Of a DNA stretch of 64,000 nucleotides, positions 41,883 through 63,782 are shown one piece after another. The stretch is taken from NCBI GenBank assembly GCA_964035545.1, contig OZ037770.1, positions 12,824,642 to 12,888,641 of the forward strand, read 5' to 3'. The position numbers were made by a program, and so were the translations under genes. This DNA is from Bugula neritina (lineage: Eukaryota; Animalia; Bryozoa). Under the pieces are notes generated by a model that saw only the letters and a list, made by a program, of their open reading frames with translations, did not search any database and was not told the origin of the DNA. Every line of letters begins with the position of its first letter. Position 1 is the stretch's first letter.

Positions 41883-43934
41883 TCAAGAGTTATCATCTCT
41901 TCTGTTATAGCCATTAAACCCAGGAAAGAGGTAGAGTCTTCTCATGTGAGTGAGAGTATCCCAGGCTACAACCAGCTGTCCACTGTCCAACTTTTTCTTC
42001 AGACACAGTTTCCTGACTTTAGTCTGCACCTAAACATAATCATAAATAACTGACAGTTTCAATAGTTTAGATTCCCGAGTAGAGAAGTTATGAGGTTTGT
42101 GACATAAAGCCATGTGACCATGACTCAGTTATCAATATATGTAAACGAACCAACCTTCACAACTGGCATATTTTTTCTTTATTGAATAATCTAATTTTAT
42201 CACTATACTGATTAGCCAAATGTGGTGAGCTAAGTGGAAGATTGTGTTCACTAAAGCTTCACATGTTTAAATTGCTTTACATCTTTCCACATAGTACTGC
42301 TTTACAAGAGGTTCATTTTCAAAGTTAAACTTGTAGACTTACTTGTTTGAAAATAGTGTAGAGGTCATGGTGACAGGCATGTTTGTACATTGAAGATACC
42401 AGAGCTCTAATCATTAGAGATCCATACACACGATGTCTCTTCGATGTAAATGCTGTAACAGATCATATAGAAATACACAATTCAGCAAGCGCATATAATG
42501 GAAGTAATAATGCATACAGAAGTGTAATATAGTAACTGACTAACTCAAACTGAACTCACACTCCATACTGGATTTCACTACCAGCAAATCATCATAGTTC
42601 AGTCTAGTCATAGCCTCAGCTTTCTTATCTCCTGGAACTCCAACAGGGTGTCGTGCTTGTGTCCCTACACCCTCTCTCTGCGCCGGTTCAGCCACTCGTG
42701 CTGAGTCTATATCTCCGTCACCAACAGTTTTATCTTCTGGAACTTCAACAGGATGTGGTGACCCTGTCAATGCATCCTTTTCCAGAGCTGGTTCAGCCTC
42801 TGGTACTGAGTTTATACCTCCTTCATCAACATCTTCTTCAGCTGTGAAATAAACTGGCTATACAGAGAGATGCTAATAGGTGATTTATAAAACCACTGAA
42901 TTCTAACTATCTATTTTCTGCTGAGATGTATATCTATATACTCTGCAGATAGTCAACAGGCACTAATAACTTTGAGATAATATAAAGATAAACATTATAA
43001 GCATGTATCAAGGAACTACTAACTGCTCTACTTACAATCTTTAGTAGATTTTTTGGAGTTCTCTTCTTTTTTAGACTCGGAGTTTTTAGCTCTCTGGACT
43101 TTAGCAAGGGAAGGTGACACTACTTCGGCATCCTCTATCTGAGCTTTTCCAATATCAGTTGCTGGGTCTATACCTTTCTCACCAACATCTATCCTGGCTG
43201 TAACAATTATATGAATATTCAAAACTTTCAAATTGCTTATAGAAAAAACAAAATAAGCCCCCCTCCCCCGTTCAGAATAATGATAAAGAGTCATTTCATT
43301 CTATTTACTAAATTGGGACAGCAAAGCAGAAAATTTATCAAAATTACTTGTTATCTATATGCATATAATGTAGTGACTCAAAAATAATTGCTTCATACAA
43401 ATAGTGTTAGCTATATTTTGACTCAGCTGATGGTAGGTAAAGCTTACTTCCACTACAGGTTTCCAGAATAACAATCTTCGGTCTCCCAGCCATCCCGGGG
43501 AAGTTCAGTGGGGTCAACAGGTCATACACATCAGTGAGCTTCACTCTCCTCCCATCTACTCCATAGATGTAGTTGTTTACACCTCCATGAGTCATGATAA
43601 CCAACACATGACATCCCAGATCTTCATGTTCCTTTTGTTGGACTTCATCTTTGATGGTGGACAGAATAGCCTAAATAATTTTGTAGCAAAATACTGTAAA
43701 TAGGCTAGACGATGTCTCTTTTGACCATCATAAACACAAACATTATTATTGTACCAAACATACCGCTGCTTTCAGATCTGTATGTGTCACAACATCAAAC
43801 TTGAAAGCTTTCAACATGACTGAAATATTCTCAACATCAGTATCTGAACCTTGCCTACACAAATCTGGTCCCTCATCAAAGTTCTTGTTGTTGATTATAA
43901 GAGCTCTGCCTCTTTTCCGTGTCATAGTAAACAC
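41883..43934 (-). other. Caspase (C14A) domain exons, large and small subunit
   Basis: RGRALIINNKNF, R-x-GSDTD, VIMTHG (catalytic His), GRPKIVILETCSG (catalytic Cys), DDLLVVKSS, SKR....GSLMIRAL and TL...RLYLFPG all match caspase p20/p10 motifs. Confidence 0.92.
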
Positions 43935-46900
43935 CTGCAGATGTAAAGAACAAAATGGTTGGTAACTTTCTGAAAGAAATTGTTGTTATTTCTAAATATG
44001 GTAAATATCATTTTCGTCAGGTGACAGTTACCTTATCAGTGTTTGAAAAGAGCTTTTTGATTTTCAAGGTAGTAGTTCTTTCCAGTTTAAGTCTCATCAA
44101 CTTCATTTGTTCCCCTTCTTTATCAGGGTACAAGTACTCGTCTTCATCAGAAAGATCACTCAGATCATCATCAGCTGTGACCTCTTCAGTTCTTTTATCT
44201 GATTGGTTGTTATCTTCAACTACAAATATAAAACGATATAGTAGTATTTAAGTGCAACAGCATAACAGCGTGCCACCCTACAAGTTGAGCACTATACATA
44301 TAATCTTTCATAGGTGTGAATGATTTGCTCGATAAAAATTTGATTTCTGTGATAGACTTGAGTTAGTCGCTATAAAATATCAATTTGAACTAAAAAGCTG
44401 TTAAGCGACAGTATATTCGAAACCACTAGATTGGATTTAGTGCAGTTTTCTACCTGAAAGGTTGCTTTTCTCTTGCTGTCCTCTAGCAAGCAACTCACTC
44501 ACAGTTCTTTGAAAGGTCTCCAAATCATCTCTTGACATGCTCTCACCTAAATATTAGAAAACATGAATTAAAATATCTCGCATGAAAAAGACAATTTTTT
44601 ATATACTAATAAATTGTTAATGACAAAAAGATCTGTAAAGGATCTAATCTTTCAAAGGTTTTTTACTATCCCCATCTCATTAATACCATAAAAAGCATTT
44701 TTATTATTTCAATGAGTATCTTTTGGCATACAAAAATTTCAAGATGCTAAAATTTTTAGGAATTGTGGAAGAAACAGATACTACTGAAACTCAAATAAAA
44801 GAAGCATACATGGGTGGAAAAAAGCTGAAGGAACTTCCTCATCTTTACAAAGGGTTATTGAGGATCCCTGGTACCAGTTGACTAGGGGGGAAGATTTCAA
44901 GGAGCGGAGGCACCATTGAGGCCTTGTTATTTTCTCAACTTGAGAGTTGCCTAACAGCAAGCAGTGTCCACAGTGAACTGACGGAACCGGTCTGCATGCT
45001 GTCCATGTTTCTAGAACCTGTCTGAGGATGCTGTTGGTAGCATTAATCAGGGTCTGCCACATTCTGCTGATGTTTTCGGCGTCTGATGAAACGAATAGAA
45101 GCACTTTTCTTGATTTGTAATCGTGTATCAGCTGAGTGTAGATTTTATCATGATACACATTGGCTCCATTTCTCTTCACTTTGATTTTAGAGATTTCATC
45201 AGGAAACAGCTGCAGTAAACCAACTGTCATCTGGTGGGATACGTAGTGTGGTAGTGCCAGCCCATTGAATTCAATACCAACTAACAGAAACATGCTTTTA
45301 GGTGGTGAGAAGTTATGGTTGAAGTATTCCTTGGCAAACTGTGGCGCAATGAAGCATGAGTAAATTGGGTCTTTATCAGAAGCATCATGTAGTGGACCAT
45401 GTAGCAGACGGAAAGTCTTAAGCAGGCAAATAGCAACTGCCCAGTCCTGAGGCTCATGGAATCCAGATTCTTTTCTTATTAAATAGTTGAAAAGAATTTC
45501 CCTTAAAACACCTGTTTTAGTGAAATGATCTACAGACTCTTCAAAATCCTGTAGCTCAAATTTATCACCACCAAAATTAAGTAGTGAGAATTGATCACGT
45601 CGACACTGCCACACATTAGAATCATGATTATGCATTACGGTTAGAAGCTTGGTAACTTCTGATATCTTGTGGAAGATGTAAGGCTTCAGAGTATCCATAT
45701 CTTTGTACCACAATATCTTACCGCAGTCATGCATGTAGGTAAGAATTATGTCCAGCTGACTTGATTTAATCTGAAGGTTCTGCTGTTGGAAGGTGGCCAG
45801 GATACACCAGAATGAGCTGTAAGTAGACTTTAGAGAGAGAACTTTCTCATTCACCTCTTCCCAAATTAAAGGCAAAGACTTCACAAACTTTTGACTGCTT
45901 TGTAGAAGCGATTTCTTGATCTTGTCAAACACTTCATATCCATCGTCAGCTCCGACTTCATAAATGTCATCTTCAACAAACACCCTACCTGCTGACTCCA
46001 CAAAATGCTGAATTTGACAAAATTCTCCACCCAATGCTTTCTCCTCCTCAACAATCTCAACACTAATTTGATTCATTAGTTTGAGAAAGGTTGACTTTTG
46101 CTCCTGAAACTTGATGTTAGTGAATTTGTCTTTGTGAGTCAAAATGAGCTTTGGTGCACCCAAAGTTGGGTTAGCCAAATAGAGATGAGACATGTAATCA
46201 AAGGCCAATCTTCTCACAGCTTCTCTACTGGAAAACTCTGTAGAAAGGTTGTTGAATTCCGCCATATTGACTACAAAAACGGGAATACAATTTTGTTTCA
46301 GCGTGAGTTGATATGTCGCATGATACACTTCCTGTCCCCCCATGTCAAGGACACGTAGCACTGTTCCATCTACTTCAACTTCCTGAACATTGAAGACTTT
46401 TGTCGTCTCATCTATGGCAGCTTCAGGGCTTCTGTCTATTAAGACTCTCTTCCTCTCAGGACTTTGCAAGGTCTTGATTAGACTTGTTTTACCGGCCATA
46501 GAATTTCCCAGTACAGCTATTGTAGCAAAGGGGATATTTTTTCCAGAACCTTTAGCTAAATCCTTCAAATATTGTCTCACAGCATCTAATCCTCTCCGAC
46601 AGACTTCCCTTGGAGGAGATGTGAGAGCAAAACAACTATCTGTGTTTAGTCCTTGAAGCTGGGTCAGCTGTAATATCTCCTGGTCTAGAGACTTCAGAAA
46701 TTTATTGTCGGATACATTCAGCTCTTGCAGACTACTCAATGTGTACACAGAAGATGGGATGTTGGTAAAACTATTGCCTGATATGTCCAGTTTCTCCAAT
46801 TTTTTTAGACTTTGTACACTAAAAAGAAATGAGTGAGAGCTGAGCTTTAATTGAATGAGGAAGCATGTAAAGCAGATTGGAGTGATAGAATAAAATGGTA

Positions 46901-49900
46901 ATTTATGTGTAAACAAGAGAGCAACCTAGCTGTGAATATCATATCATAACAAGTCACTAAAACTTCTGCCCCTCAGACTTCTAAATTACAAGCCATCGTG
47001 TTAACCATCACAATACAAGGCTACTGGGAAATTTCAACATTATATTCAATATTTCTTATTAATTCACTATCTTTAATATCTTTCAAACTTTAATTCAGGC
47101 CACAGATAAATAAGATTTAATTCAAGATACAGTCGAATAATTGAGCTTTCATATTTATGGTAAGAGTAGGTAGGTAGGTAACACTTTTAAACATTGCAAG
47201 AACAGCCTTGCTATCTAAGGTTAGCTTATTTCAAACGTTTTTATACACGCTGCAAGCATATTTTTAATAAAAATTCAGTGAATTTAACTTTTATTCAACC
47301 TGCCTTTACACCACAATAACTACACTCAAGAAGCAATAGTTCTAAAACCCCAACTGATTGTAGAAAAACTCTGCGACACAACCTTGCAGTGGCTTTAGCT
47401 CAATTTCACTGTGGTTGTAGTAGCTTAAGTAATTATATCTAAATGTAAGCATTTATATAACTACATACCAAGTATTTACTATAACTATTGGTATTTATAT
47501 AACAACCAAATATTTACTAGTTATTACTTATTAGTATTACTCAGAGTAAGTATTATCATCATGTTAATTAGACTACAAGACTTTATCTGGTTTAGTATGA
47601 ATAACTTCTACAGTAAGTTACTACAGCCAATTAGACAATCATCGTAAACTACACAAACCAATACTAAGACTTATATAGTGTTGAGCATAAACAGGTATAC
47701 ATAACAGCAATAGCATAAGATTTAAAGTACTGCCTTTAATGAACCAGGTATAACTTCAATATAATGTGGTTTGCAGGAGGTTAGAAATAGTTTCATGTCA
47801 TTGGCTAATGACAAAGACTGCCTAATACAAGCAACTTTGTATGGTTTCTTTATCTATTTGAATAGAAAAACTCCCTGCAGTGGATAAGCCATTAATTAGG
47901 AGTGAGTGGCTAGCAAGTTGAACTTGTATATGTAACAACAACTAAAGCCATTAGATTACAAACTTGTAAATACACTGATAAAAATAGTAAAACCAAGATA
48001 AGTTAAATGTGCTGCAGGTACCTTGGATATGAATAGAGGTGACCATATTATAGTCATACTATTTACACGCAGTAGGGTACATAACCAAGTTCCTAACCAA
48101 CTAAAACTATATGGAATTATTAATGCCCTGTTTCTAGTGACTGCATGTGCACTATTAATAGGCTCTCAGGTTCACAGACAGCACAGCTAGGGACATACAT
48201 GTAATAGCCCCGTATATTAAATAAAAAAGCTCACTGTCTTACAAGTAAATAAATTTCATTGACTGACCTATTTATGGTTAATGTCATTATTCTTATGTAA
48301 GTAATTATTTAAGCAGTTAACTGCATGGGGCTGGCATATTAGAGTTTGGTGGTATTTTATAGGCTTTTACAAAGCTTCAAAACTTTCATTCTATGGTAAA
48401 TAAAATTTTTTATCAGAAACATCAACCTAGTAAAAATTGTAAATAATTACAATTTTGATTTCTTCGGCCATTTTATAGTCTCACGTACGAGTATTATATT
48501 ATGCATATTATATACACTGTACATGCTGTACATTATGTATATTACTGCCATCACTTCTATCAACTCTATAATCTTACCCACATTTCAAAATAGTTCTACT
48601 ATAATTATAGTTTAATGTATACATGCAGTATGTAGTGAACTATAGGCTATGATTTGGGCAATAAATCTTCACTGATGTCCTTTATTGTATTATTACTCAA
48701 ACATTACACTGGTTGGCATCATTAGACAGTAATTGACATTGATTGACATCGTCAAGACTACAATTGCAATGCAAAACTTACATAATCTCAGCATAAACTT
48801 ATATAAACAACATGAAAAATACAAACAGTTGCATTCCACAAAAAGAAAAAATATAATTAATATAAATGATTTATTTATTTTTGCTCTCTACAAATATCAA
48901 CTAGTTCGCTAGCTCCTGCTATTATCAAGTGTCAGATATTTGTTATGTAGCGCAGACTAGGGTGTAGAAAGCTTTTCTATAAAAGTGCTTAATATAGCTA
49001 AGGTAGTTGAGCAAACTAGCACTAATTTCGCTACACAGTACATACCTCTTTGGTAGAGTACTGAGTTTACAGCGACTGATATTCAACTCTCTCAGTGATT
49101 GTAAAGATGTGAACATCTCATCTGGTAGATTATCAGACAGGTTATTCCTTGACAGTTTCAGTATTTGAAGATTTCTCAGTTGAAGCATACTGTGACATAA
49201 ATGTAACACATCTTGTATTGATACAGTCATTATTAACCTGTTATACAACTAGGATTATAAAAATACTAAAAACTTGTAGTTAAAGTTTGCCCTCTGTGTC
49301 TTGCTATATCGAAGTGAGTTAATGTTAGATGGTGAAATGTTATATCATTTATCATACCATTTATCATATATTATATAATGACTCAACCATAAAGCTTTTT
49401 TCAAATATGCTATAGAAAAGTATTACACATTAGTAATAATTTTGAAAATATAATAATAATAATTTCTGTTGAACTGTAATCTTGTACACAATTTAAAAAC
49501 AAGTCTCATCAGGACATCATGAAACTAAACCCATATTTCATTCACCAATTATACACCTGAAAATAGATTTATTTGAAATCTGCTTAAAGACAATTAATTT
49601 TAATTTCAACAAAAATCATAAACCTCTATAGCTATTAGGTAGTCCCAGCAGTAATTGCTTTCTAACAGATATACAAATAAAACTTCTTTTCTAAATGTTA
49701 AGAAATACAGATCATATGAAAATATACCACAGTTATAAATACAGAGGTGATGTTTCTATTTCTATTACAGTATTATTATACAAGAATTGTTATCGCATTC
49801 ACATTCTGCTATAATTTTTACATTATGCATACAAGAGTTATTATATTAAACTGTATACACAGTACATACCTCTTTGGTAGAGTACTGAGTTTACAGCGAC

Positions 49901-52900
49901 TGATATTCAACTCTCTCAGTGATTGTAAAGATGTGAACATCTCATCTGGTAGATTATCAGACAGGTTATTCCTTGACAGTTTCAGTATTTGAAGATTTCT
50001 CAGTTGAAGCATACTGTGACATAAATGTAACACATCTTGTATTGATACAGTCATTATTAACCTGTTATACAACTAGGATTATAAAAATACTAAAAACTTG
50101 TAGTTAAAGTTTGCCCTCTGTGTCTTGCTATATCGAAGTGAGTTAATGTTAGATGGTGAAATGTTATATCATTTATCATACCATTTATCATATATTATAT
50201 AATGACTCAACCATAAAGCTTTTTTCAAATATGCTATAGAAAAGTATTACACATTAGTAATAATTTTGAAAATATAATAATAATAATTTCTGTTGAACTG
50301 TAATCTTGTACACAATTTAAAAACAAGTCTCATCAGGACATCATGAAACTAAACCCATATTTCATTCACCAATTATACACCTGAAAATAGATTTATTTGA
50401 AATCTGCTTAAAGACAATTAATTTTAATTTCAACAAAAATCATAAACCTCTATAGCTATTAGGTAGTCCCAGCAGTAATTGCTTTCTAACAGATATACAA
50501 ATAAAACTTCTTTTCTAAATGTTAAGAAATACAGATCATATGAAAATATACCACAGTTATAAATACAGAGGTGATGTTTCTATTTCTATTACAGTATTAT
50601 TATACAAGAATTGTTATCGCATTCACATTCTGCTATAATTTTTACATTATGCATACAAGAGTTATTATATTAAACTGTATACACAGTACATACCTCTTTG
50701 GTAGAGTACTGAGTTCACACCAATTGATATCCAACTCTCTCAGTGATTGTAAAGATGTGAACATCTCATCTGGTAGATTATCAGACAGGTTATTCCCTGA
50801 CAGTTTCAGTATTTGAAGATTTCTCAGTTGAGGTATGCTGTAACATAAATGGAACACATGTTGTATTGATACAGTCATTATTGACCTGTTATACAACTAG
50901 GATTATAAAAATACTAAAAACTTGTAGTTAAAGTTTGCCCTCTGTGTCTTGCTATATCGAAGTGAGTTAATGTTAGATGGTGAAATGTTATATCATTTAT
51001 CATACCATTTATCATATATTATATAATGACTCAACCATAAAGCTTTTTTCAAATATGCTATAGAAAAGTATTACACATTAGTAATAATTTTGAAAATATA
51101 ATAATAATAATTTCTGTTGAACTGTAATCTTGTACACAATTTAAAAACAAGTCTCATCAGGACATCATGAAACTAAACCCATATTTCATTCACCAATTAT
51201 ACACCTGAAAATAGATTTATTTGAAATCTGCTTAAAGACAATTAATTTTAATTTCAACAAAAATCATAAACCTCTATAGCTATTAGGTAGTCCCAGCAGT
51301 AATTGCTTTCTAACAGATATACAAATAAAACTTCTTTTCTAAATGTTAAGAAATACAGATCATATGAAAATATACCACAGTTATAAATACAGAGGTGATG
51401 TTTCTATTTCTATTACAGTATTATTATACAAGAATTGTTATCGCATTCACATTCTGCTATAATTTTTACATTATGCATACAAGAGTTATTATATTAAACT
51501 GCATACACAGTACATACCTCTTTGGTAGAGTACTGAGTTCACACCAATTGATATCCAACTCTCTCAGTGATTGTAAAGATGTGAACATCTCATCTGGTAG
51601 ATTATCAGACAGGTTATTCCCTGACAGTTTCAGTATTTGAAGATTTCTCAGTTGAGGTATGCTGTAACATAAATGGAACACATGTTGTATTGATACAGTC
51701 ATTATTGACCTGTTATACAACTAGGATTATGAAAATACTAAAAACTTGTAGTTAAAGTTTGCTCTCTGTGTCTTGCTATATCGAAGTGAGGAAATGTTAG
51801 ATGGTGAACTGTTATGTCATTCATCATACCATTTATGATAAATCATCATTTATCATATATTATATAATGACTCAACCATAAAGTTATTTTCAAATCTGAT
51901 ATAGAAAAAATATTACACAAATTATACTTATAAAAATATGATAATTATATTTTCTGTTGCACTGTAATGTTGTACATACTTTAAAAATAAATCCCATCAG
52001 GACATCATAGAACTAAATCCGTATATTTTATCCACCAGTTAAACATATATTTAAAAATTGATTTACTCAAAACCAGCCTAAATATAAACAGCTGTGCATG
52101 TCCTGCATGGTCTTAATTTTAACAAAACTTATAAACCTCTATAGCTATTAGGTAGTCCAAGTCGTAATTGCTTTCTAATGGATATACAAATAAAACTTCT
52201 TTTGTAAATGTTTAGAAATATAGATAATATGAAAATATAATACAGTTATAAATACAGAGGTGGTGTTTTTATTTCTATTACAGTATCATTATACAAGAAT
52301 TGTTATCACATTCACATTCTACTATATAATTATAACATTATATATACAAGAGTTATTATAATAAACTGTACACACAGTACATACCTCTTTGGTAGAGTAC
52401 TGAGTCCACAGTTACTGATATCCAACTCTCTCAGTGATTGTAAAGATGTGAACATATCAGGAAATAATGAAACTAAATTCCATATTTTTTCACCAATTAT
52501 ATTTAAATATATATTCATATAAAATCTGCCTAAATATAAATAGTTGTGCATGTGATACTTGATTTTAATTTTAACAAAAATCATAAACTTCTATACAATT
52601 AGGTAGTCACAGCAGTAATTACTTTTTAATAGATGTACAAATAAAACTCCTTTTCCAAATGTTTAGAAGTATAGATCACATGAAAATAGAATAGAGTTAT
52701 AAATACAAAGGTGGTGTTTCTATTTCTATTACAGTATCATTATACAACAAATATTATCATGTTCACATTCTGATATAATTATTACATTATGTATACAAGA
52801 GTTATTATATTGAAGTGTATACACACAGTACATACCTCTTTGGTAGAGTACTGAGTCCACAGTGACTGATATCCAACTCTCTCAGTGATTGTAAAGATGT

Positions 52901-54372
52901 GAACAAATCATCTGGTAGATTACCAGACAGGTTATTCCCTGACAATTTCAGTATTTGAAGACTTCTCAGTTGAAGCATACTGTAATATAAATATAACACA
53001 TATTGTATTAATATAATCATTATTGTTATTAATTGTTATACAATTAGGAATATGAAAATACTACAAAAAACCTTTAGGTAAAATTCGCCCTCCGTGCCTT
53101 GTTACATTGAAGTGCATTAATTTAAGGCAGTGAAATGTTATGACATATATAACATATATTATAATATAATGAATCTACCATAAAGTCATTTTCAAATCAA
53201 CTAGAAAAATTATTACACAGATAATTATTATGAAAATGTAAAAATAGTTTTTGTTATGTTGTAATCTTGTACACAGTTTAAAAACAAGTCACATCAGGAA
53301 ATAATAAAACTAAATTCCATATTTTTTTCACCAATTATATTTAAATATATATTCATATAAAATCTGCCTAAATATAAATTATAGTTGTGCATGTGATACT
53401 TGATTTTAATTTTAACAAAAATCATAAACTTCTATACAATTAGGTAGTCACAGCAGTAATTACTTTCTAATAGATGTACAAATAAAACTACTTTTCCAAA
53501 TGTTTAGAAATATAGATAATATGAAAATATACCACAGTTATAAATACAGAGATGGTGTTTCTATTTCTATGACAGTATCATTATACAATAATTATTATCA
53601 CACTCACATTCTGCTATAATTATTACATTATGTATACAAGAGTTATTATATTAAACTGTATATACCCAGTACATACCTTTTTGGTAGAGTAGTGAGTTTA
53701 CAGTGAGTGATATTCAACTTTCTCAGTGATTGTAAAGATGTGAACATATCATCTGGTAGACTGTCATCAGACAGTCTATTCCCTGACATATACAGTATTT
53801 GAAGATTTCTCAGTTGAGATATTCTGTAATATAACTATAATATAACACATGTTGTTTTGATAAAGTTTACTATACATAGAATACACTAATCTGTACTATA
53901 GAATACTACTATGTTATTATTTTCTCTCTCAGTAAATTATTTATATTTTATTACAATGTGTTCCATATTACCTAGCATAGTCAGCAGAGGAATTCATCCA
54001 CCTCAAACTCAGATAAGTGAGATGAGGGAACAGATTGTGAATATCTGGAGGAATGTCACCCCACAGTATAACATGAGTCACAGTATGATGTCTATTTTCT
54101 TCTCTCAACTCATTTATAGTGTAGCATTTAGCTGCGATATTCTTCATCCATCCTTTATCAGACTCATCTATACTGGCAGTGTTGAACCGTATGTCATATC
54201 TTTTCTCTGTAAATCAGATACACAAAGAATAGAAACATTATTTATATATTTATCCACAAACTGGATATAGTCTTTGATGTGCATCTGATAAATCAAAATA
54301 TATTCTCATGACAAAAACTGACTATTAAATTATATATACAATGTTTACTAAAACTGACTTACTTTCAGCCAT
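41883..54372 (-). CDS. LRR-Roc GTPase-COR-caspase fusion protein (~1498 aa; Roco family with a C-terminal peptidase C14A domain)
   Basis: 17 phase-consistent GT-AG exons: 54372-54363, 54206-53972, LRR cassettes 53823-53677, 52979-52836, 51661-51518, 50837-50694, 50013-49870 and 49189-49046, then 46818-44810 (LRR, Roc, COR), 44546-44454, 44219-44032, 43934-43764, 43670-43448, 43197-43036, 42841-42560, 42452-42343, 42029-41883. Total 4497 nt with no internal stop. Confidence 0.88.
44810..46818 (-). other. Exon with 3 LRRs, LRR cap, Roc GTPase and COR domain
   Basis: P-loop GNSMAGKTS, switch Thr (DETT), G3 DMGGQ, G4 THKD, COR motif LTYMHDCGKILWY, and the pre-Roc cap LTSPPREV...GLDAVRQYL. Confidence 0.92.
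49032..53830 (-). repeat. Tandem array of LRR exon+intron units (824-bp period in the youngest part)
   Basis: Exon ends at 49046, 49870, 50694 and 51518 are exactly 824 bp apart. More diverged units at 52385 (truncated), 52836 and 53677. Confidence 0.97.
52385..52459 (-). pseudogene. Truncated LRR pseudo-exon (donor kept; acceptor and first LRR deleted)
   Basis: Encodes DMFTSLQSLRELDISNCGLSTLPK|GTATGT, then joins directly to mid-intron sequence (ATCAGGAAATAAT, compare 53293) through an ATCA microhomology. Confidence 0.85.
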
Positions 54373-56328: not shown

Positions 56329-56635
56329 TGTGGTGGCTCGTGGAGCTACCAGCAGCACAGTACGCAGGGTCGCGTAATTGACCCGGAACGATGACAGCCA
56401 ATTAGCGGCTTTAATAGTTAGCAGCAGTAGTAGTTTTCCCGCTGTTAGTCAGTCGAAGTTAGAGTGTTGAATAGTCTAGATGTGTGGAATTATTATTGTA
56501 TTTGTATCGTTTTTTGTAATGTACTCTTGTGTTTAAAATATATACTCGTTCACTCGACTTATCCTGGTGCAGTTCTCTAGCAAGTAATTAGACTCTCTGG
56601 ATCGCATATCAACCCTAATTCTGAAAATTATAACA
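56329..56635 (+). repeat. 5' LTR (307 bp)
   Basis: Matches 63477-63782 with about 7 substitutions and 1 indel by eye. Confidence 0.97.
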
Positions 56636-56636
56636 G

Positions 56637-56654
56637 TGGTGGCAGCGGTGGGAT
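56637..56654 (+). promoter_or_regulatory. Primer-binding site, tRNA-Leu
   Basis: TGGTGGCAGCGGTGGGAT is complementary to the 3' 18 nt (ATCCCACCGCTGCCA-CCA) of eukaryotic tRNA-Leu(AAG/TAG); it starts 1 nt after the LTR. Confidence 0.9.
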
Positions 56655-56668
56655 AGTGCACATCCAAG

Positions 56669-57622
56669 ATGGAGACTGAAAACGCTGGAATGCAACCACC
56701 GGCAGTAGAAGGTGAGCGTAGAGACAATGCTGTAGAGACAATGCCTGTCAACCATGTAATAGAAGAGCGAAGGGTTCCGCGAGAACTAACTGAAGACCGC
56801 TACCGGTTAAAGGCGTCCACCTTCACGGGCGAAAAAGAGGTGGAGCAATTCATCCAAGAGTTTGGCGACGTAATGGACGTCGCCCAGTGGCCCCCTAGGG
56901 TGGCCCTGCTGAAGCTTAGAATGGCATTGATAGACAAAGCCAAGCCTTATGGGCTGGGCGTAGACATCGATAATATCTTTGCTTCTCTGCGGGCCCGCTT
57001 CGGCCTCTCTGCTACAGATGCCCGGGCCCGACTGCAAAGGTTGCGGCGTGATCCCCGCACCCCGCTGCGGGAACATGCCGCCGCGGTTATGAAGCTGGCA
57101 CAGATCGCATACAGCGACTTGCTCCCAGTCAACCGCTAGAGGTATACCCTTGACGCCTTCATAGCATCTGTCGACGATCTGGGTCTCCACCACCAGTTTC
57201 TAGCTAGGGGAGTCACCACCGTCGAAGATGCTCTGACAGAGGGGGAAGCTTACCTCCTAGCCAATCAGATGCATAAAAGTCGCAGAAACTCCCGCCAAGT
57301 GGAGGTAGACCGCGCGGACACGGCAGCGGGACGAGAGGAGGAAACCTCCGCAACGGCTGCCGTGGCTCAGTTAGCGACGGCATCGAAAGTCACTCAACTG
57401 ACAGACATGCTGGCCAAACTGATAGCAACACTGACACCCCAAACCCCAGTAGGTACCGCCACTGAGCCCGTGCAGCTACCGGCGCCGCCACCGGGGGAAA
57501 CGGTCAGTTTTTGCTGGGAATGCGGAAATCAAGGACATTTTCGCAGGTACTGTCTCTACCTAACTCCGGGGTTAAACTACCGCGGCCCGCAGATGTTCCC
57601 ACCTCTTGCGGGCCGGCGATGA
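56669..57622 (+). pseudogene. gag: gag with a CCHC zinc knuckle, interrupted by an in-frame TAG
   Basis: ORFs 56669-57139 and 57269-57622 share a frame; CWECGNQGHFRRYC = CX2CX4HX4C. Confidence 0.9.
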
Positions 57623-60600
57623 AACCTCCAGGGAAGAAGAAACGCAGGTCACCCAGACAGGTGCCGCGTGCTGGCAACCAACAGTAGCAACAGCCGCGAC
57701 GGACCAACAAGGGGCTCCGCCCCGCCGCTGCCTTTTTCGTGCCCCTCCACAATCGATTCGACGGGCTACCAGCCCAAGAATCCGGATGGGAGCCAGCAAA
57801 GGTAGCCGGAAATCTAGCCTCGGCACCTTCGAGGTCCACTTACGGCCATCCCAAGAGACCTCCTTCGCGACCCAAAGCGAGGGAGGTACTCCCTGCGAGA
57901 GTAAGGCCTGAAGAGAGAGTTCAGGTGCAGCCCCATGGGAACAGCTATTTCTTGCCCGGTAAATTGGAAGGCAAAGCTGTTACTTTTCTCATTGATTCAG
58001 GCTGTACCACGAACCTCCTAAGCCGCCAACTCTTCGACACCCTCAGTGCTAGGGTCAGGGACGAGATGGAACCATACGGGGGGGGGGGAGTATGGCACCC
58101 TAGCTGACGGGTCATGCCTTCCCTTCTATGGTATAATTGAGCTGACGGGACGAGTCCGTGATCAAACGATCCAAGAGACGTCTATCGTCAGTCAGCTCAA
58201 GGAGGACGCCATCCTCGGGATGCCATTCCTAAAATGGCACGGATGTCACATCGATTTTAGTAAATCTGCGATGGTGATGTCCGGGCGGGAACTCGCCTGC
58301 GTCGACAAGTTTGGCCGCCCTTTGGTGGGAGGGGTGCGGGTGGTACGCAACCGTACCATACCAGGCCGCTCCCGGGCTACCATTCACTGCAGGGTGAACA
58401 ATAGCCGGATCTCTGGACTCGGGGTAGTCGAAGGCGCGCACGAAAGGATCCAACTTGCCAGCAGTCTAAATCAGCTGACTGAGCAAGGGGAGATCTTGGT
58501 GCAGTGCGTCAACCCCTTTACCGAGTCTGTCAAGCTTCCGGCTGGGTCTATGCTGGGCCGTTTTCACTCTGTTCAGGAGGAGGACGTGGGCCCGTTGCTG
58601 GGTGATGCGACGGAGGCATCCTCTCGGTGCCCTACTCAAGGGCGAAGGACAGTCCCAGCACATCTCCGGGAGTTATATGAAACAGCCTGTGGCGGCTGCG
58701 CGAGTAACAAAGAACGCCAAGCTATGGCGAAGTTGCTACGCGACTACGGTGATGTGTTCAGCAGCGAAGATCATGACGTGGGGCTGACTGGAGTTGTCAG
58801 ACACGAAATACCGCTGACTGCAAGGACAGTCCCTATTCGGCAACTCACACGCCGGCTGGGGCCGGAGAAAGAGAAGGAGGTTAGCCAACAAGTACGGGAT
58901 CTTCTGGATCGCGGCCTCATAGAGCCCGCCCATAGTGCGTGGAGCTCGCCGGTCGTACTGGTCCGGAAGAAAGATGGCAGTTGGCGGTTCTGTGTGGATT
59001 ACCGCAAACTCAATAGCGTAACCATACAGGACGCCTACTCTCTACCTCGTATTGACGAGTCATTGGATGCCCTAGCCGGCAGCAAGTACTTCAGTACGTT
59101 AGACTTGCTGAGTGGCTACTGGCAAGTCCCTCTGAGTCCCGACGCCCAGGAGAAAGCGGCGTTTATCACACGGGACGATTTGTGGAAGTGGAAGGTGTTG
59201 CCTTTCGGGTTAACCTCCGCTCCAGCCACCTTCCAGAGGTTGATGGAGCAAGTCCTCAGCGGGCTCCATTGGAAGACACTGCTGATCTACCTCGATGATG
59301 TCATCGTGATCTCCCCAGACTTCGAGACGCATGTCAGTCGTCTGCAGGAGGTCTTCGAGAGGCTCCAAGGTGCCGGTCTTAAGCTCAAACCTTTCAAGTG
59401 CGCTCTATTGCAGCCGGAGGTCAAGTACCTGGGGCACGTTGTCGGTCGAAACGGCGTGGCAACGGATCTCGAAAAGGTACGGGCGATAGAAGACTGGGTC
59501 ACCCCCTAAGACTTGACCGGACTTCGGGCTTTCTTGGGGCTGGTAAGGTATTACAGGCAATACATACCAGAATTTGCGAGCATAGCGCAGCCATTAAACC
59601 GGCTCATCGCAAAGGGGGTGACGTGGCAGTGGACCCCAGTCGAACAAGGAGCGTTCGACCGCCTCAAGGGTTGCCTACTAACGGCGCCCATCTTGGTCTA
59701 CCCAGACCCCACTCTGGAGTACATCCTCGACACTGACGCCAGTGACCAAAATGTTGGCGCTGTGCTGTCTCAAGTGCAGAAAGGCCGAGAGGTAATAGTA
59801 GCCTACTACAGCAAGTCTCTCTCACCCACTGAACGAAATTACTGCATTACCCGCAAGGAGCTGCTGGCAGTAATCAAGTCAGTGAAGCACTTCAGATCAT
59901 ACTTATACGGCAGGAAGTTCCGGCTGCGTACGGATCATGCCTCGCTGATCTGGTTGTGCAAGAGAGCAGAGCCCTCTAGTCAGGTCGCCCAGTGGCTCGA
60001 AATCCTAGCTGAATTCTCGTACCGGATCGAACATCGGCCGGGCAAGAGACACAGCAATGCGGATGGTTTGAGCCGCCGACCTGATGGAGGTTGCAAACAG
60101 TGTCTCAACATCGAGAGGAGGGACGGAGGTTTCCCTGCGATGCGAGTTGGAGACATTAGCTCACCACGGAGCACCGTTTGACTGGGACCAGGGTCAACTC
60201 AGGCAGGAGGTTGACGAGTCCCCGGAGGTTGTACAGAACCTCCGCGCCAATCCTGTACTGGCCGATAATGTCCAGGAGCTGAAGAAGCTCCAAGAGGAGT
60301 TGCCTGGGGTAGTGGCAGACATATATCGGGCCAAAAAGGACGGGCGACGACCCAGGGAGGAACGCATACGGCAGGGATGCGCCGAGTTCCGGCTACTCTG
60401 CCAGCGTTGGGACTCGCTGAGGATCGGGCAGGATGGTCTGCCCCAGTGCCATACGCTGTGAGTTAATCTAGGACACTCACAAACAGGCCCACGCAGGGGT
60501 CAAGAGAGTGATCTCCAAATTACAACTCCGGTGGTATTGGCCCAAAATGGGGCGGGATGTCCGGCTCAGAGTAAAGCAGTGCGAAATCTGCCAGGCCAGC

Positions 60601-62092
60601 AAGCATGGCCGTCTCCCTGGTGAAGCGGGACGGCGGAGGCTATATGCTGGCAGGCCGTGGCAAGTGGTAGCTGTTGACCTGGTCGGACCCATGCCCCTGA
60701 CCCCCAGAGACAATAGTTGGATCTTAGTACTGACCGACCACTTTACTAGGTGGGCAGATGCTCTGGCTATCCCAGATGCGTCAGCCCCAACAGTGGCCAG
60801 GACGCTAGACCAACATGTATTGTTATTTCGGGCTCCCCAAACAGATACACTCTGATCAAGGCGCTCAGTTCCAGTCTCAACTGATAAGCGACCTTTGCCG
60901 CCTCTGGGGAGTAAATCAGAGCAGGACCACCCCCTACCACCCTCAAGGTAATGGGGTGGTGGAGCGCAACAACCGGATGCTAGGTGATGCGCTCCGGAGT
61001 CTCCTCCTTGGACGCAGCCAAGAGGAATGGGACAAGGTGTTGCCGCAAGTCATGCGTGCATACCGTAGCACCCCACACACCAGTACTGGTGAGACCCCAA
61101 ACCTCTTGATGCTTGGGAGAGAGACCCGCGTCCCTGACCATCTCACCTACCACGTTCCAGAGCTAGACAACTCGATTCACGAGTATGCCAGTGAACTAGT
61201 GGAACGAATGAAGGCCGCACACGATATACTGCATGAACAGCAGTGGAAGGTGTGACACGAAGATTCCGAGGAACCACCCCTCTATCAAACGGGAGATAAG
61301 GTGTGGATGGTCAATTACCGTAGGCGTCGCGGACAGGCGGCTAAGTTACAGCCTAAGTTCGTGGGACCCTACGTGATCGTCGAGGCTATGCCCAACCATA
61401 CGTACAAGATTGAGCGTTCAGGACAGGTGTCTATCCAGAATGAGTCTCGCTTAAAGCCGTATTGGGCTAGCCCCGACGCGGTGGGAGAAGCTCCCCCCCC
61501 GTTGTTGGAGCCCAGGAGGCAGACAACAACGCGTGGGCGACGGCGGCAGGGACCTGAATATGAAGTGGTCATACCGGGGGAGGAAGAATTGGTGAGAGAT
61601 GAGCGACTGCTTTTACCATCAGAAGCGTGTCCGCCACCGCCAAATCTGATTCCACCACTTCCAGAAACCGAGCCGGTTCCGGAAGTGCAAACCCCCATGG
61701 AGGGAGGGGCTCCATCCGGAGAACCAGAAGACATGACCACTAACGGTGAAGTAGAGACGCCACCAGAGGCCCCTACTAATACACCGACGAGTGCGTCACC
61801 TCCCCTAGAGCGGGGACAACATACGAGGCAACCCCCCGCATATTTGAAGGACTTCGTATGCGACTGCGTTAAAAGCGGCGCGTATGAAAGTCTAGGGAAA
61901 AACCGTACGAGAAAAGTATCGAGCAAATGTGGGAGTTGTCAACACCACGAAAATGTCAACTTTTGTATCGGCAGAAATAGAAACAAAATTCATCCGCCGG
62001 GTGCACAAAGTCTTAATCACGCACCCCAACCACGTTGCTCGATCTTTTCATACGCTGATGCAGTCAAGAGTAGACGTGTTCCTAATCAGTAG
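57571..62092 (+). pseudogene. pol: pol (protease, RT, RNase H, integrase), disrupted
   Basis: FLIDSG protease, YLDD RT, TDAS/RTDH RNase H, VDLVGP/HSDQG/NGVVER integrase. The protease frame is -1 relative to gag, with a possible slip site GTTAAAC near 57571. Frameshifts near 58080, 60130, 60460 and 60818; in-frame stops at 59507 and 61253. Confidence 0.93.
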
Positions 62093-62116
62093 TCCAAACC
62101 ATTTCACAAATTCAGT

Positions 62117-63189
62117 ATGTCTTACGACAACAGATCGTGGGGTGAGTTAACTATATCTTGATATGGAAACTAGATTGCATCACTCAGCTCCGACTCACTG
62201 AGTCAAATGAGCTGGAGATAGGCTAGTGAACTACCGTGGTAAGAACTCAGTTTGACTTAGAGATTTTATAATCTCATTGCAATACGTGTTCTATCTGACT
62301 ATTCACTACCATAAATCTCTACGAGGTAACTGAACGAGAAGTTGCCAGGCTATTCAAGCCGACAACACTGCAGTGTATTATACTAACGCTGTTGAAACTC
62401 TTTCAGGTTACACTCGACCCGTTACAACCAGGGTACGGGATAGAGCACTTCCCGCTCCGCATCCTGAGGAGTATACCAATGGTGACCGGCCCGAGCTACT
62501 GCGCCGCCGTTGGCGGTGGGTGTCGCCGGAGACAGAGGAGCAGATAGAAACAGCCTGGGGATCCAAAAGAAAGGACGCGGTGCCAGATTTGTGACGAGGA
62601 GTGCGCCTCTCACCGCTCCTTGAAGCTGCATGTCAACGCCCATCTATTGCTCACGTTCTGCCCCTGTGGATATAACGACGTCTACCCCTACCCCGTTACC
62701 AGACATCAGGCGACGGGCTGTTTCTCCGAAGAGAATTATGTGGTGGATGCCAAACTCTATCCAGAATTCTTAACTCTGATACGACCTCTAGTGAAGAAGG
62801 CAATGTTGTTGGCCGTCCTGACCTCGGGCTTCCAACGCGTACTAGACTACGCCAGGCAGCAATCTCCATTGGTGTCCGACCGCCCTCAGATTGCGTATAC
62901 CCCCGAAGAGTTTTCCTATCCTGAAGAAGGAGAAGTCTTCCCTACCCCGACGAAGAGACGGACCCGGTCTCCAAGTCCCCCTCTTCGTCGCAGACGGACA
63001 CCGTCCCCAGACTCTGCTCGCCTGGCCACAGTAGAGGAACGCCTCCTCCGACTGCAGGCTGAGTTTACCCAGTTAGCACCAGATCTGCTTAATACCACGA
63101 CGGGACTCTTTCAGCTAAAAGGCTCGGTGGGCCGGATTAAAAAGAAATTACGTACATGCCAGGCCAAACATGGGCGTGCCCAACACTGA
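62117..63189 (+). pseudogene. Spliced accessory ORF of the retrotransposon: tandem zinc fingers, RS/P-rich segment and coiled coil (one frameshift)
   Basis: Exon 62117-62141 (ATG...TGG G|GTGAGT) joins in phase to TTTCAG|62407. CQICDEECASHRSLKLHVNAH (C2H2) starts at 62581, followed by CPC-x12-H-x4-C. A 1-nt shift near 62557-62560 is needed to join the two frames. Confidence 0.65.
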
Positions 63190-63476
63190 CTCTGGTTCTG
63201 TTGCCCGGAATGATCCACAAGCCTCGTCCTCTTGGGAGACCCAAGACTATCGTGCAAATGCTTGACTGCTCGACAGCCGATTCCTTGTCCAATACCACAA
63301 CTAGCCGGTATTCTATAGCTGGCCAATTGTATGTGACCTGCTGTTATAATGACTCTGTCTGTTATTATGTATCTTTATATGTGTTATGTATTTTCTTTTG
63401 GTCTACTGATGTATGTGGTTAATGATGAACGTTTTTTTTATATATCAGAAAGAGGGCTTTCTGCTGGTGGGGGCGG

Positions 63477-63782
63477 TGTGGTGGCTCGTGGAGCTACCAG
63501 CAGCACAGTACGCAGGGTCGCGTAATTGACCCGGAACAATGACAGCCAATTAGCGGCTTTAATAGTTAGCAGCAGTAGTAGTTTTCCCGCTGTTAGTCAG
63601 TCGAAGTTAGAGTGTTGAATAGTCTAGATGTGTGTAATTATTAATGTATTTGTATCGTTTTTGTAATGTACTCTTGTGTTTAAAATATATACTCGATCAC
63701 TTAACTTATCCTGGTGTAGTTCTCTAGCAAGTAATTAGACTCTCTGGATCGCATATCAACCCTAATTCTGAAAATTATAACA
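63477..63782 (+). repeat. 3' LTR (306 bp)
   Basis: TG...CA ends, preceded by GGTGGGGGCGG and followed by the CTAC TSD. Confidence 0.97.

Follow-up and report, generated by a model that had tools for sequence, protein, structure and literature searches.

A single gene on the minus strand of the Bugula neritina window (the whole 64,000-nucleotide stretch analysed here) joins leucine-rich repeats (LRRs), a Roc GTPase, a COR domain and a two-subunit caspase in one open frame. We consider it rather probable that the gene is functional and belongs to an extensive family of bryozoan immune or danger receptors, each a single cytosolic chain in which the signal passes from LRRs through Roc-COR to the caspase, and we infer a sensor-switch-protease function for its product. 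The immune-sensor reading draws indirect support from the large family, the variation on the concave face of the LRRs, the swapping of caspase types, and a search of the genome that found no full NLR-type NTPase.

The 17 exons (54372–41883), assembled by script from their coordinates, give 4,497 nt and 1,498 residues, starting at 54372 and with the terminal stop (41885–41883) as the only one; all 16 introns are GT..AG and the exon phases close. The domain order is 15–16 LRRs, Roc, COR, an acidic bridge and both caspase subunits, which bears out the in-phase 17-exon frame with about 15 LRRs proposed in the initial annotation. Database profile searches were done exon by exon, and the joined translation was used for phases and for comparison with fetched proteins. 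Neither a signal peptide nor a membrane segment is visible, and the protein is thus taken to be cytosolic. The coding part of exon 1 (54363–54372, 10 nt, with the start codon) is in phase with exon 2 (53972–54206), which carries the N-terminal cap and one degenerate LRR and has a 74% identical counterpart in an independent assembly (L031). Exons 3 (53677–53823, 147 nt) and 4 (52836–52979, 144 nt), both of phase 2-2, encode two LRRs each, as do the identical exons 5 (51661–51518) and 6 (50837–50694) of variant A, repeated with an 824-nt period (Pfam LRR_8, E 1e-06), and the identical exons 7 (50013–49870) and 8 (49189–49046) of variant B. These six exons of 144–147 nt and three repeats in exon 9 make 15 LRRs, with the degenerate one of exon 2 in addition. 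A truncated LRR exon remnant (52384–52460) has no acceptor of its own, the nearest AG giving 89 nt and a frame shift, and is probably skipped in splicing.

Exon 9 (44810–46818; 2,009 nt) encodes the last three LRRs, the Roc GTPase and the complete COR. The Roc domain (Pfam Roc in the exon-wise search: E 2e-08, 34.9 bits against a cut-off of 27) contains the P-loop GNSMAGKT (residue 475), DETT, DMGGQ (529) and THKD (598); G1, the G2 threonine, G3 and the G4 His/Asp are nearly invariant among 82 homologues, as befits the Roc of a Roco protein. Pfam matches COR-A below its cut-off (E 0.0011) and gives no match for COR-B. The AlphaFold model of exon 9 has a pLDDT of 90.7, and its best Foldseek matches over the whole length are LRRK1, C. 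tepidum Roco and LRRK2, with TM-scores by target of 0.60–0.63 against the isolated COR (3dpt) and 0.66 against RocCOR (3dpu). On this model, a COR with both A and B lobes directly follows Roc, as in Roco proteins. The NTPase of the gene is this Roc GTPase rather than the NACHT or NB-ARC ATPase of NLR/STAND proteins; the product is NLR-like in its working at most, and is not an NLR.

The COR is followed by exon 10 (44454–44546, phase 1-1), the first bridge exon, which encodes a post-COR helix with a homologous helix in a Watersipora model, and by exon 11 (44032–44219, phase 1-0), an acidic bridge with a conserved DLSD motif that runs into the caspase N-terminus. Both exons join COR to caspase in phase, at exactly the coordinates claimed initially. 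Exon 12 (43764–43934) encodes the first half of the large subunit with the Arg179-equivalent (CRQGS), and exon 13 (43448–43670) the catalytic His (THGG) and Cys (ETCSG). Exons 14 (43197–43036) and 15 (42841–42560) contain an acidic inter-subunit linker of 137 residues, shorter in L031 (64–74% identical), and the start of the small subunit, which is completed by exons 16 (42452–42343) and 17 (42029–41883) with the Arg341-equivalent (FTSKR) and the stop. Pfam Peptidase_C14 matches exons 12 (E 5.4e-09) and 13 (E 1.9e-10), and exon 16 weakly; the closest PDB relatives of exon 13 are CED-3, caspase-8 and caspase-2. The fold was modelled on a Watersipora homologue with Gln in the catalytic motif (P0074), giving a confident caspase fold, a low-confidence tether to COR, and TM-scores by target of ~0.83–0.85 against caspase-9, -8 and -3. 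The protein thus has the two-subunit caspase fold of clan CD, family C14A, and the expected dyad is present (His1219 and Cys1263).

The paralogue count called for earlier comes to at least 83 genes: the genome contains at least 83 Roc-COR exons, and 83 of 83 have an exon with the caspase His and Cys downstream on the same strand (paralogue structure was taken from 5-kb loci and coordinate lists, paired by eye). LRR variants A and B are 9 nt apart, and the six differences inside the repeat core fall without exception in codons of the concave face; across LRRs, entropy also peaks at concave-face positions, with 2.4–3.1 bits at four of them. In the largest clade, pN is 0.34 on the concave face and 0.05 elsewhere, with a pS of 0.24, as crude pooled pairwise values for a small sample of 27 exons with sites classed by LRR consensus. 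At the other end of the protein, the caspase type switches at least two times, and probably four, on the Roc-COR tree (like the caspase tree, a quick tree). The loci L014 and L012 share 93% of exon 9, and their alignment ends right after it. On these sequence comparisons, caspase types have been swapped between near-identical Roc-COR exons.

An intron-blind six-frame search of the genome gave NACHT-like matches but no full NACHT, NB-ARC or nSTAND3 domain, and three gasdermin-like matches, to the gasdermin N-terminal domain. Given the at least 83 genes and the lack of ordinary NLR sensors in that search, the fusion looks like a putative one-piece NLR substitute. NLR inflammasomes and Apaf-1/CED-4 apoptosomes are STAND ATPase rings that recruit a separate caspase through CARD or PYD; the fusion protein would likewise couple a repeat sensor to a nucleotide switch and a caspase activated by proximity, except that its switch is a GTPase dimer module and its caspase is part of the same chain. 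Initiator caspases are activated by induced proximity, and on this basis ligand binding would drive Roc-COR into a dimer or oligomer in which two caspase domains meet and self-process without an adaptor. The LRR solenoid, from its pattern of variation, would be the variable recognition surface, and the caspase would be tethered to COR by the helix and a flexible acidic segment, with the DLSD motif of the bridge as a candidate protease-release site. Roc-COR may act as a GTP/GDP-controlled dimerisation switch, if its cycle resembles those of CtRoco and LRRK2. CtRoco, the best-studied Roco, passes through a nucleotide-dependent monomer–dimer cycle in which it is monomeric on binding GTP and dimeric with GDP or without nucleotide (PMC5714945), so that a simple scheme of GTP on, dimer, caspase on would run the wrong way. 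By this analogy, the protein would most likely rest as a GTP-bound monomer and be active as a GDP-bound or empty dimer. The output would most likely be cell death or cleavage of immune substrates, for which the gasdermin-like proteins are candidates.

It is also conceivable, but in our judgement unlikely, that the family serves colony self/non-self recognition, or a programmed turnover of tissue as in polypide regression and metamorphosis, instead of pathogen sensing, with the LRRs reading polymorphic self proteins. Expansion and a diversifying LRR face would be expected there too, the number of LRR exons varies (six at this locus, four in L031), and bryozoan allo-incompatibility has been named as a cell-death context (PMC8195603). 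The protein is, however, cytosolic by the absence of a visible signal peptide or membrane segment, and its dozens of loci are spread over several contigs. Known invertebrate allorecognition systems, in contrast, occupy one or a few linked loci. Rapid birth-and-death of genes is likewise compatible with allorecognition or developmental roles.

The catalytic pentapeptide of the gene is ETCSG (Glu at 43463–43461, Cys at 43457–43455) in place of the canonical QACxG, a departure unremarked in the initial annotation. In the S1 pocket, the equivalents of Arg179 and Arg341 are kept, and that of Gln283 is Glu. Gln283 is one of three residues that bind the P1 Asp, and para- and metacaspases carry an acidic residue there (PMC2064784); canonical caspase activity is therefore not to be assumed for this copy, which could be slow or inactive. 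Glu occupies the position in 32 genomic copies and His in 13 others, whereas the Gln-type paralogues and the Watersipora copies have the canonical S1 residues and QACxG motif. Judged from these residues, the Arg-Glu-Arg pocket of this gene and 31 others probably differs from canonical caspases in P1 preference or rate. Paracaspases and metacaspases lack Arg179 and have an S1 pocket made acidic by Asp at 283 and Asp or Glu at 341; identity as either was rejected, only position 283 being acidic here and both arginine equivalents being retained. The Glu-type copies, including this one, might instead be poorly active or inactive regulators, such as decoys or partners in the manner of c-FLIP, which pair through Roc-COR with Gln-type members and tune or block them. 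The altered S1 residue, the Gln in all full-length Watersipora copies examined, and the presence of Glu, His and Gln types in shared tandem clusters with near-identical Roc-COR modules that could heterodimerise all speak for such a role. We nevertheless give it little credence: His, Cys and both S1 arginines are retained, the Cys in all 32 copies, the caspase exons are under purifying selection, and among Glu-type copies exon 13 is 77–92% conserved against 63–78% for Roc-COR. Returning to the receptor reading, we tentatively suggest, as a broader and doubtful extension, that in cheilostome bryozoans NLR/Apaf-1-type STAND sensors have largely disappeared or were never expanded, and that these animals rely for intracellular surveillance on 80–130 single-chain Roco-caspases, in which LRR exon shuffling would vary the input and Gln, Glu and His caspase modules swapped by recombination the output, including caspase-fold enzymes that have ceased to prefer Asp.

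RNA-type contigs from four runs of four studies skip 263, 234 and 97 nt at the three COR-to-caspase joints (in 4/4, 3/4 and 4/4 runs, respectively), and also the small-subunit introns of 107 and 313 nt. The contigs are short, none spanning LRR to caspase singly, and are only ~90–95% identical to the gene region, and hence derive from alleles, a sibling population or close paralogues; the exact allele is absent from the runs on record as RNA. The exon 9–10 joint, found in all four runs, supports the single transcript through COR and caspase that had been postulated. Values of dN/dS indicate purifying selection on Roc (0.06–0.15), COR (0.15–0.24), the caspase exons (0.03–0.39; exons 16 and 17, 0.03 and 0.08 against L031) and bridge exon 11 (0.07–0.14 against four paralogues or alleles). 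A pseudogene was rejected on the open frame and this selection, and an MFHAS1 orthologue beside an unrelated caspase on the splices that join both and the 83/83 linkage. Read-through of intron 9 meets a stop after 27 nt (44783–44781) and AATAAA 76 nt further on (44705), and RefSeq holds Watersipora LRR-Roc-COR models without caspase as well as short caspase-only models of the same clade; the main product could accordingly be an MFHAS1-like LRR-Roc-COR protein ended in intron 9 by read-through or polyadenylation, with a mostly separate caspase and the fusion as a minor isoform. This is very unlikely in view of the exon 9–10 joint, the caspase exon behind every Roc-COR exon, at least 13 fused Watersipora models, the selection on exon 11, and exon 12, which has no start of its own ahead of the first caspase strand except an internal Met. 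An artefact of assembly or prediction has next to no probability, because the identical exon pairs 5/6 and 7/8, with 824-nt repeats and 0–5 intron differences, might have inflated the LRR count but would alter that number only, and the same order of parts in L031, the metagenome contigs L032 and L033, and Watersipora refutes an artefactual fusion.

The same fusion occurs in at least 13 Watersipora subatra RefSeq models. The Watersipora homologues are labelled MFHAS1-like in RefSeq, and the DLSD motif is conserved in Watersipora. Identity to an amphibian MFHAS1-named protein (P0056) is only 21%, and the spliced-on caspase sets the gene apart from effector-less MFHAS1. MFHAS1 and other group 1 Roco proteins, LRRK1, LRRK2 and DAPK1 share the LRR-Roc-COR core and fold, but have kinase or death domains or no effector, number one to four genes, and carry no protease (PMC6337361). 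The initial annotation knew of no characterised animal protein with this architecture; the architecture itself is already on record: a 1,609-residue model of Branchiostoma floridae (C3XQ16/XP_002614028.1; P0139) contains LRR-Roc-COR-A-COR-B-Peptidase_C14, and a caspase with a ROC prodomain is mentioned in passing, as a single gene, in Owenia fusiformis (PMC11463336). The annelid gene, compared by description, is likewise a lophotrochozoan caspase with Roc in front, but LRR and COR are unreported and the family is not expanded (PMC11463336). The amphioxus protein differs in its canonical QACRG and a Roc-COR only 26% identical; a quick tree with few outgroups and a long branch places its caspase outside the bryozoan clade (SH-aLRT 100), and by sequence this caspase was probably fused independently. 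The further long LRR-Roc-COR proteins that were found, of which one is from B. lanceolatum, have OTU or GT4 effectors in place of a caspase. In bacteria, LRR, AP-GTPase(Roc), COR and caspase occur together among predicted counter-invader systems (Kaur et al. 2021, PMC8195603), in which the domains follow in the same order, the LRRs evolve fast, a genome can hold many paralogues, and the C-terminal effector varies, caspase being one of the kinds listed. Those systems are predicted only and have bacterial caspase-like domains, whereas the bryozoan gene is a spliced gene of an animal, and its two-subunit caspase is of animal type and from a bryozoan-specific clade. In the quick tree, this caspase sits among animal caspases of bryozoans, one of them a CARD-caspase, which favours a fusion independent of the bacterial systems. 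Brown algal LRR-ROCO genes, proposed as candidate immune receptors (PMC11378527), also form an expanded family with LRRs on separate tandem exons, exon shuffling and diversifying selection, but number 9–47, have one LRR per exon and lack a caspase (PMC11378527, PMC3341825). Literature searches for invertebrate Roc-COR with caspase, and for bryozoan caspases together with MFHAS1, returned nothing; two reviews on Roco proteins name no caspase effector, and the architecture goes unmentioned in a preprint on an amphioxus genome and in a survey of bivalve caspases. The design is thus already known, as a prediction in bacteria, a mention in an annelid and an amphioxus model, and the literature yielded no experimental study of it. 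New here are the ETCSG pocket, the swapping of caspase types, the concave-face LRR differences, the finding of no full NLR-type domain, and the gasdermin-like matches.

The fusion offers a natural read-out for the long-standing question of how LRR input and Roc-COR nucleotide state control an attached effector: a caspase requires proximity alone, and its processing would report the dimer state directly, unlike the kinase of LRRK2. With Glu or His naturally in place of a near-invariant S1 residue, the family also provides ready tests of caspase specificity. In a phylum whose immunity is almost unstudied, it suggests a GTPase-based alternative to the inflammasome that needs no adaptor, and it converges with a design that is predicted for bacteria and that amphioxus seems to have reached on its own.

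The gene on the minus strand (54372–41883) consists of 17 exons and 16 GT..AG introns, and joining the exons gives a single 1,498-residue frame whose only stop is terminal, upholding the initial annotation of an uninterrupted fusion of LRRs, Roc, COR, and both caspase subunits. Exon 2 encodes a cap and one degenerate LRR, exons 3–8 (symmetrical, phase 2-2) two LRRs each, and exon 9 (2,009 nt) three further LRRs, Roc, and COR. Exons 10–11 bridge COR to the caspase, with its large subunit in exons 12–13, an acidic linker of 137 residues in exons 14–15, and the small subunit in exons 15–17. Exon-by-exon Pfam search detected Roc (E value, 2e-08), COR-A weakly, and Peptidase_C14 on the expected exons. 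The AlphaFold model of exon 9 (82 homologues as input; pLDDT, 90.7) resembled LRRK1, the C. tepidum LRR-Roc-COR structure, and LRRK2 along its whole length in structure comparison. It likewise matched an isolated COR structure. On these matches COR is complete, despite being barely detected by Pfam. COR-B is closed by C-x-H-C and two more Cys residues (residues 616–670 of the exon 9 piece, 46817–44784), invariant or nearly so in the 82 homologues and possibly forming a zinc site. The protein is a Roco by every feature tested, and its close homologues belong to Watersipora subatra and Bugula neritina.

Four RNA-type runs, each from a different study, supplied the contigs in which splicing was examined. 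Exactly 263 nt (exon 9–10 junction) and 97 nt (exon 11–12) are skipped in all four runs, and exactly 234 nt (exon 10–11) in three; the 107- and 313-nt introns close to the gene end are also skipped, and contig coverage tracks the exons. The bridging exons are thereby confirmed to link COR to the caspase in one message, at the level of the gene type rather than this allele, as the contigs are short, ~90–95% identical to the window, and none covers the whole gene. Independent lines agree with this: against alleles or paralogues, dN/dS is 0.07–0.14 for exon 11 and 0.03–0.39 for the caspase exons, and Roc-COR is joined to caspase in at least 13 W. subatra RefSeq models. A homologous locus in an independent assembly has the same exon order, with four LRR exons versus six here. 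In intron 9, a stop (44783–44781) and AATAAA (44705) may allow a short isoform terminating there; that the fusion is only a minor isoform is highly improbable, given the exon 9–10 splice in every run.

The gene and its family are real and well supported. Two genome searches yielded at least 83 distinct Roc-COR exons (65 and a further 18; lower bounds), supplying the paralogue count left open by the initial annotation. Visual pairing of their coordinates with 137 matches to the caspase His-Cys exon placed a same-strand caspase exon downstream of all 83, no more than 8 kb away in 80 cases and at ~11, 12, and 15 kb in the other three; therefore, most caspase exons found in the genome belong to Roco-caspases. 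Each of the 30 loci that were read retains an intact P-loop, G3, and G4. A tandem paralogue (G000:C6:12891725–12896031 of the searched genome) lies just past the right end of the window on the same strand, with a Glu-type caspase and exon 13 91% identical; the locus in the independent assembly may be its counterpart rather than that of the present gene. A cluster at C6:3.5–6.3 Mb contains >25 paralogues, a few of them with stops in the Roc-COR exon; since most of its caspase exons fail the PK-hhhh-x-x-C-x-G pattern, a further active-site class may exist. Within the window, a plus-strand Ty3/gypsy-like LTR retrotransposon (56329–63782; gag-like frames, RT, RNase H, and integrase across several frames; 307-nt LTRs at 56329–56635 and 63477–63782, 97.4% identical) lies ~2 kb upstream of the start codon. 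Two similar tandem multi-exon minus-strand genes (39232–34107 and 27748–22502) have exons galactose-binding or F5/8-like in appearance, with no Pfam match in exon-by-exon search.

The P1-Asp pocket of caspases consists of Arg179, Gln283, and Arg341, position 283 being Asp in para- and metacaspases (PMC2064784). The predicted dyad (His1219 and Cys1263) is present and equivalents of both Arg residues are kept, yet the pentapeptide is ETCSG with Glu at position 283. Fold and dyad make the protein a caspase, whereas the S1 Gln is absent and the protease is not canonical. Pattern searches placed Glu at this position in 33 genomic matches, of which one has a stop, leaving 32 copies; His occurs in 13 copies and Gln in 42 matches, with ordinary caspases among the latter. 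Full-length Watersipora copies carry Gln. Lacking the canonical S1 Gln, the Glu-type copies might be regulators, which we consider unlikely. The types diverge deeply (~40% identity in exon 12) yet follow almost identical Roc-COR exons. The paralogous locus L014 (Glu) has its closest relative in L012 (His), at 93% in DNA, with the alignment stopping directly past the Roc-COR exon, and the caspase type requires four changes on a quick Roc-COR tree, two forced by strong branches. We read this pattern as exchange of caspase modules by recombination inside clusters. At C1:33.8–35.1 Mb, Glu-, His-, and Gln-type modules alternate behind Roc-COR exons 90–94% identical in DNA, and the similarity breaks off where the large exon ends.

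Variability among 27 distinct two-LRR exons is highest at positions 11, 33, 35, 36, and 38 (2.2–3.1 bits), which are the x of LxxLxLxxNxL on the concave face, whereas framework positions are fixed. In the largest clade, pooled crude pairwise counts, rather than a codon-model test, gave pN of 0.34 for face codons versus 0.05 elsewhere, and pS of 0.24 versus 0.14. LRR variants A and B of this gene differ in the repeat core at six nucleotides, all in face codons whose encoded residue changes, while their 680-nt introns differ at only 0–5 sites. Recent unequal crossing-over is suggested by the A-A-B-B arrangement and by a truncated remnant (52460–52384); assembly may also have affected the repeat count. 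From sequence, the variation bears signs of a receptor under pressure.

With the parts, their order, splicing, selection, and fold established, we infer that ligand bound to the LRRs would change the Roc-COR state, that Roc-COR dimerization would bring two tethered caspases together, and that these would self-process in the long acidic linker, perhaps also at the conserved DLSD motif of the bridge. The model of a Gln-type Watersipora homologue (P0074) has a helix past COR, ~28 disordered residues, a confident caspase domain, and a disordered inter-subunit linker; such a tether fits activation by proximity better than rigid allosteric coupling. Since CtRoco dimerizes in its empty and GDP-bound states and is monomeric with GTP (PMC5714945), the likeliest resting state here would, by analogy, be a GTP-bound monomer; alternatively, an inhibited resting dimer would require higher-order clustering for activation. 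An acidic D/E-x-S-D motif in the exon at 44219–44032, ~35 residues N-terminal of the caspase core, is kept in Roco-caspases and one Watersipora CARD-caspase, and would fit a caspase cleavage site as well as a CK2 site.

The architecture, for which the initial annotation knew no characterised animal precedent, is not new: a bacterial system of LRR, AP-GTPase, and COR with variable effectors including caspase has been predicted (PMC8195603), a ROC-prodomain caspase is mentioned in Owenia (PMC11463336), and an uncharacterised Branchiostoma floridae model has the full architecture with QACRG. In a quick tree with few outgroups and long branches, the B. floridae caspase falls outside the bryozoan clade, which includes a CARD-caspase, suggesting separate fusions in amphioxus and bryozoans. 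Brown algal ROCOs show similar LRR exon shuffling without the protease (PMC11378527). Roco reviews name no caspase-bearing group, and neither a description of the bryozoan family nor any experiment on such a fusion was found in the literature covered, with subscription papers largely outside. Watersipora P0146 (XP_067936783.1) has two LRRs fused straight to the bridge and caspase without Roc-COR, through either a deletion or an error in the gene model. OTU and/or GT4 effectors are carried by other long LRR-Roc-COR proteins (P0145 from Branchiostoma lanceolatum, P0178, and P0112), which represent bacterial-type effector variety in animal Roco proteins.

A genome search ignoring introns, and hence only suggestive, found no full domain of NACHT, nSTAND3, or NB-ARC: NACHT (C6:312551) and nSTAND3 (C6:36833) each had a single short P-loop match, and NB-ARC had none; an intron-rich Apaf-1 could escape it. 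Three gasdermin N-terminal exon matches exceed the Pfam cut-off (C2:2048552, C2:4286293, and C2:4312189). The Roco-caspase is not an NLR, and probably works in an NLR-like way. A role in allorecognition or tissue turnover seems doubtful; it is rather likely that the protein serves as an active sensor-switch-protease in immunity.
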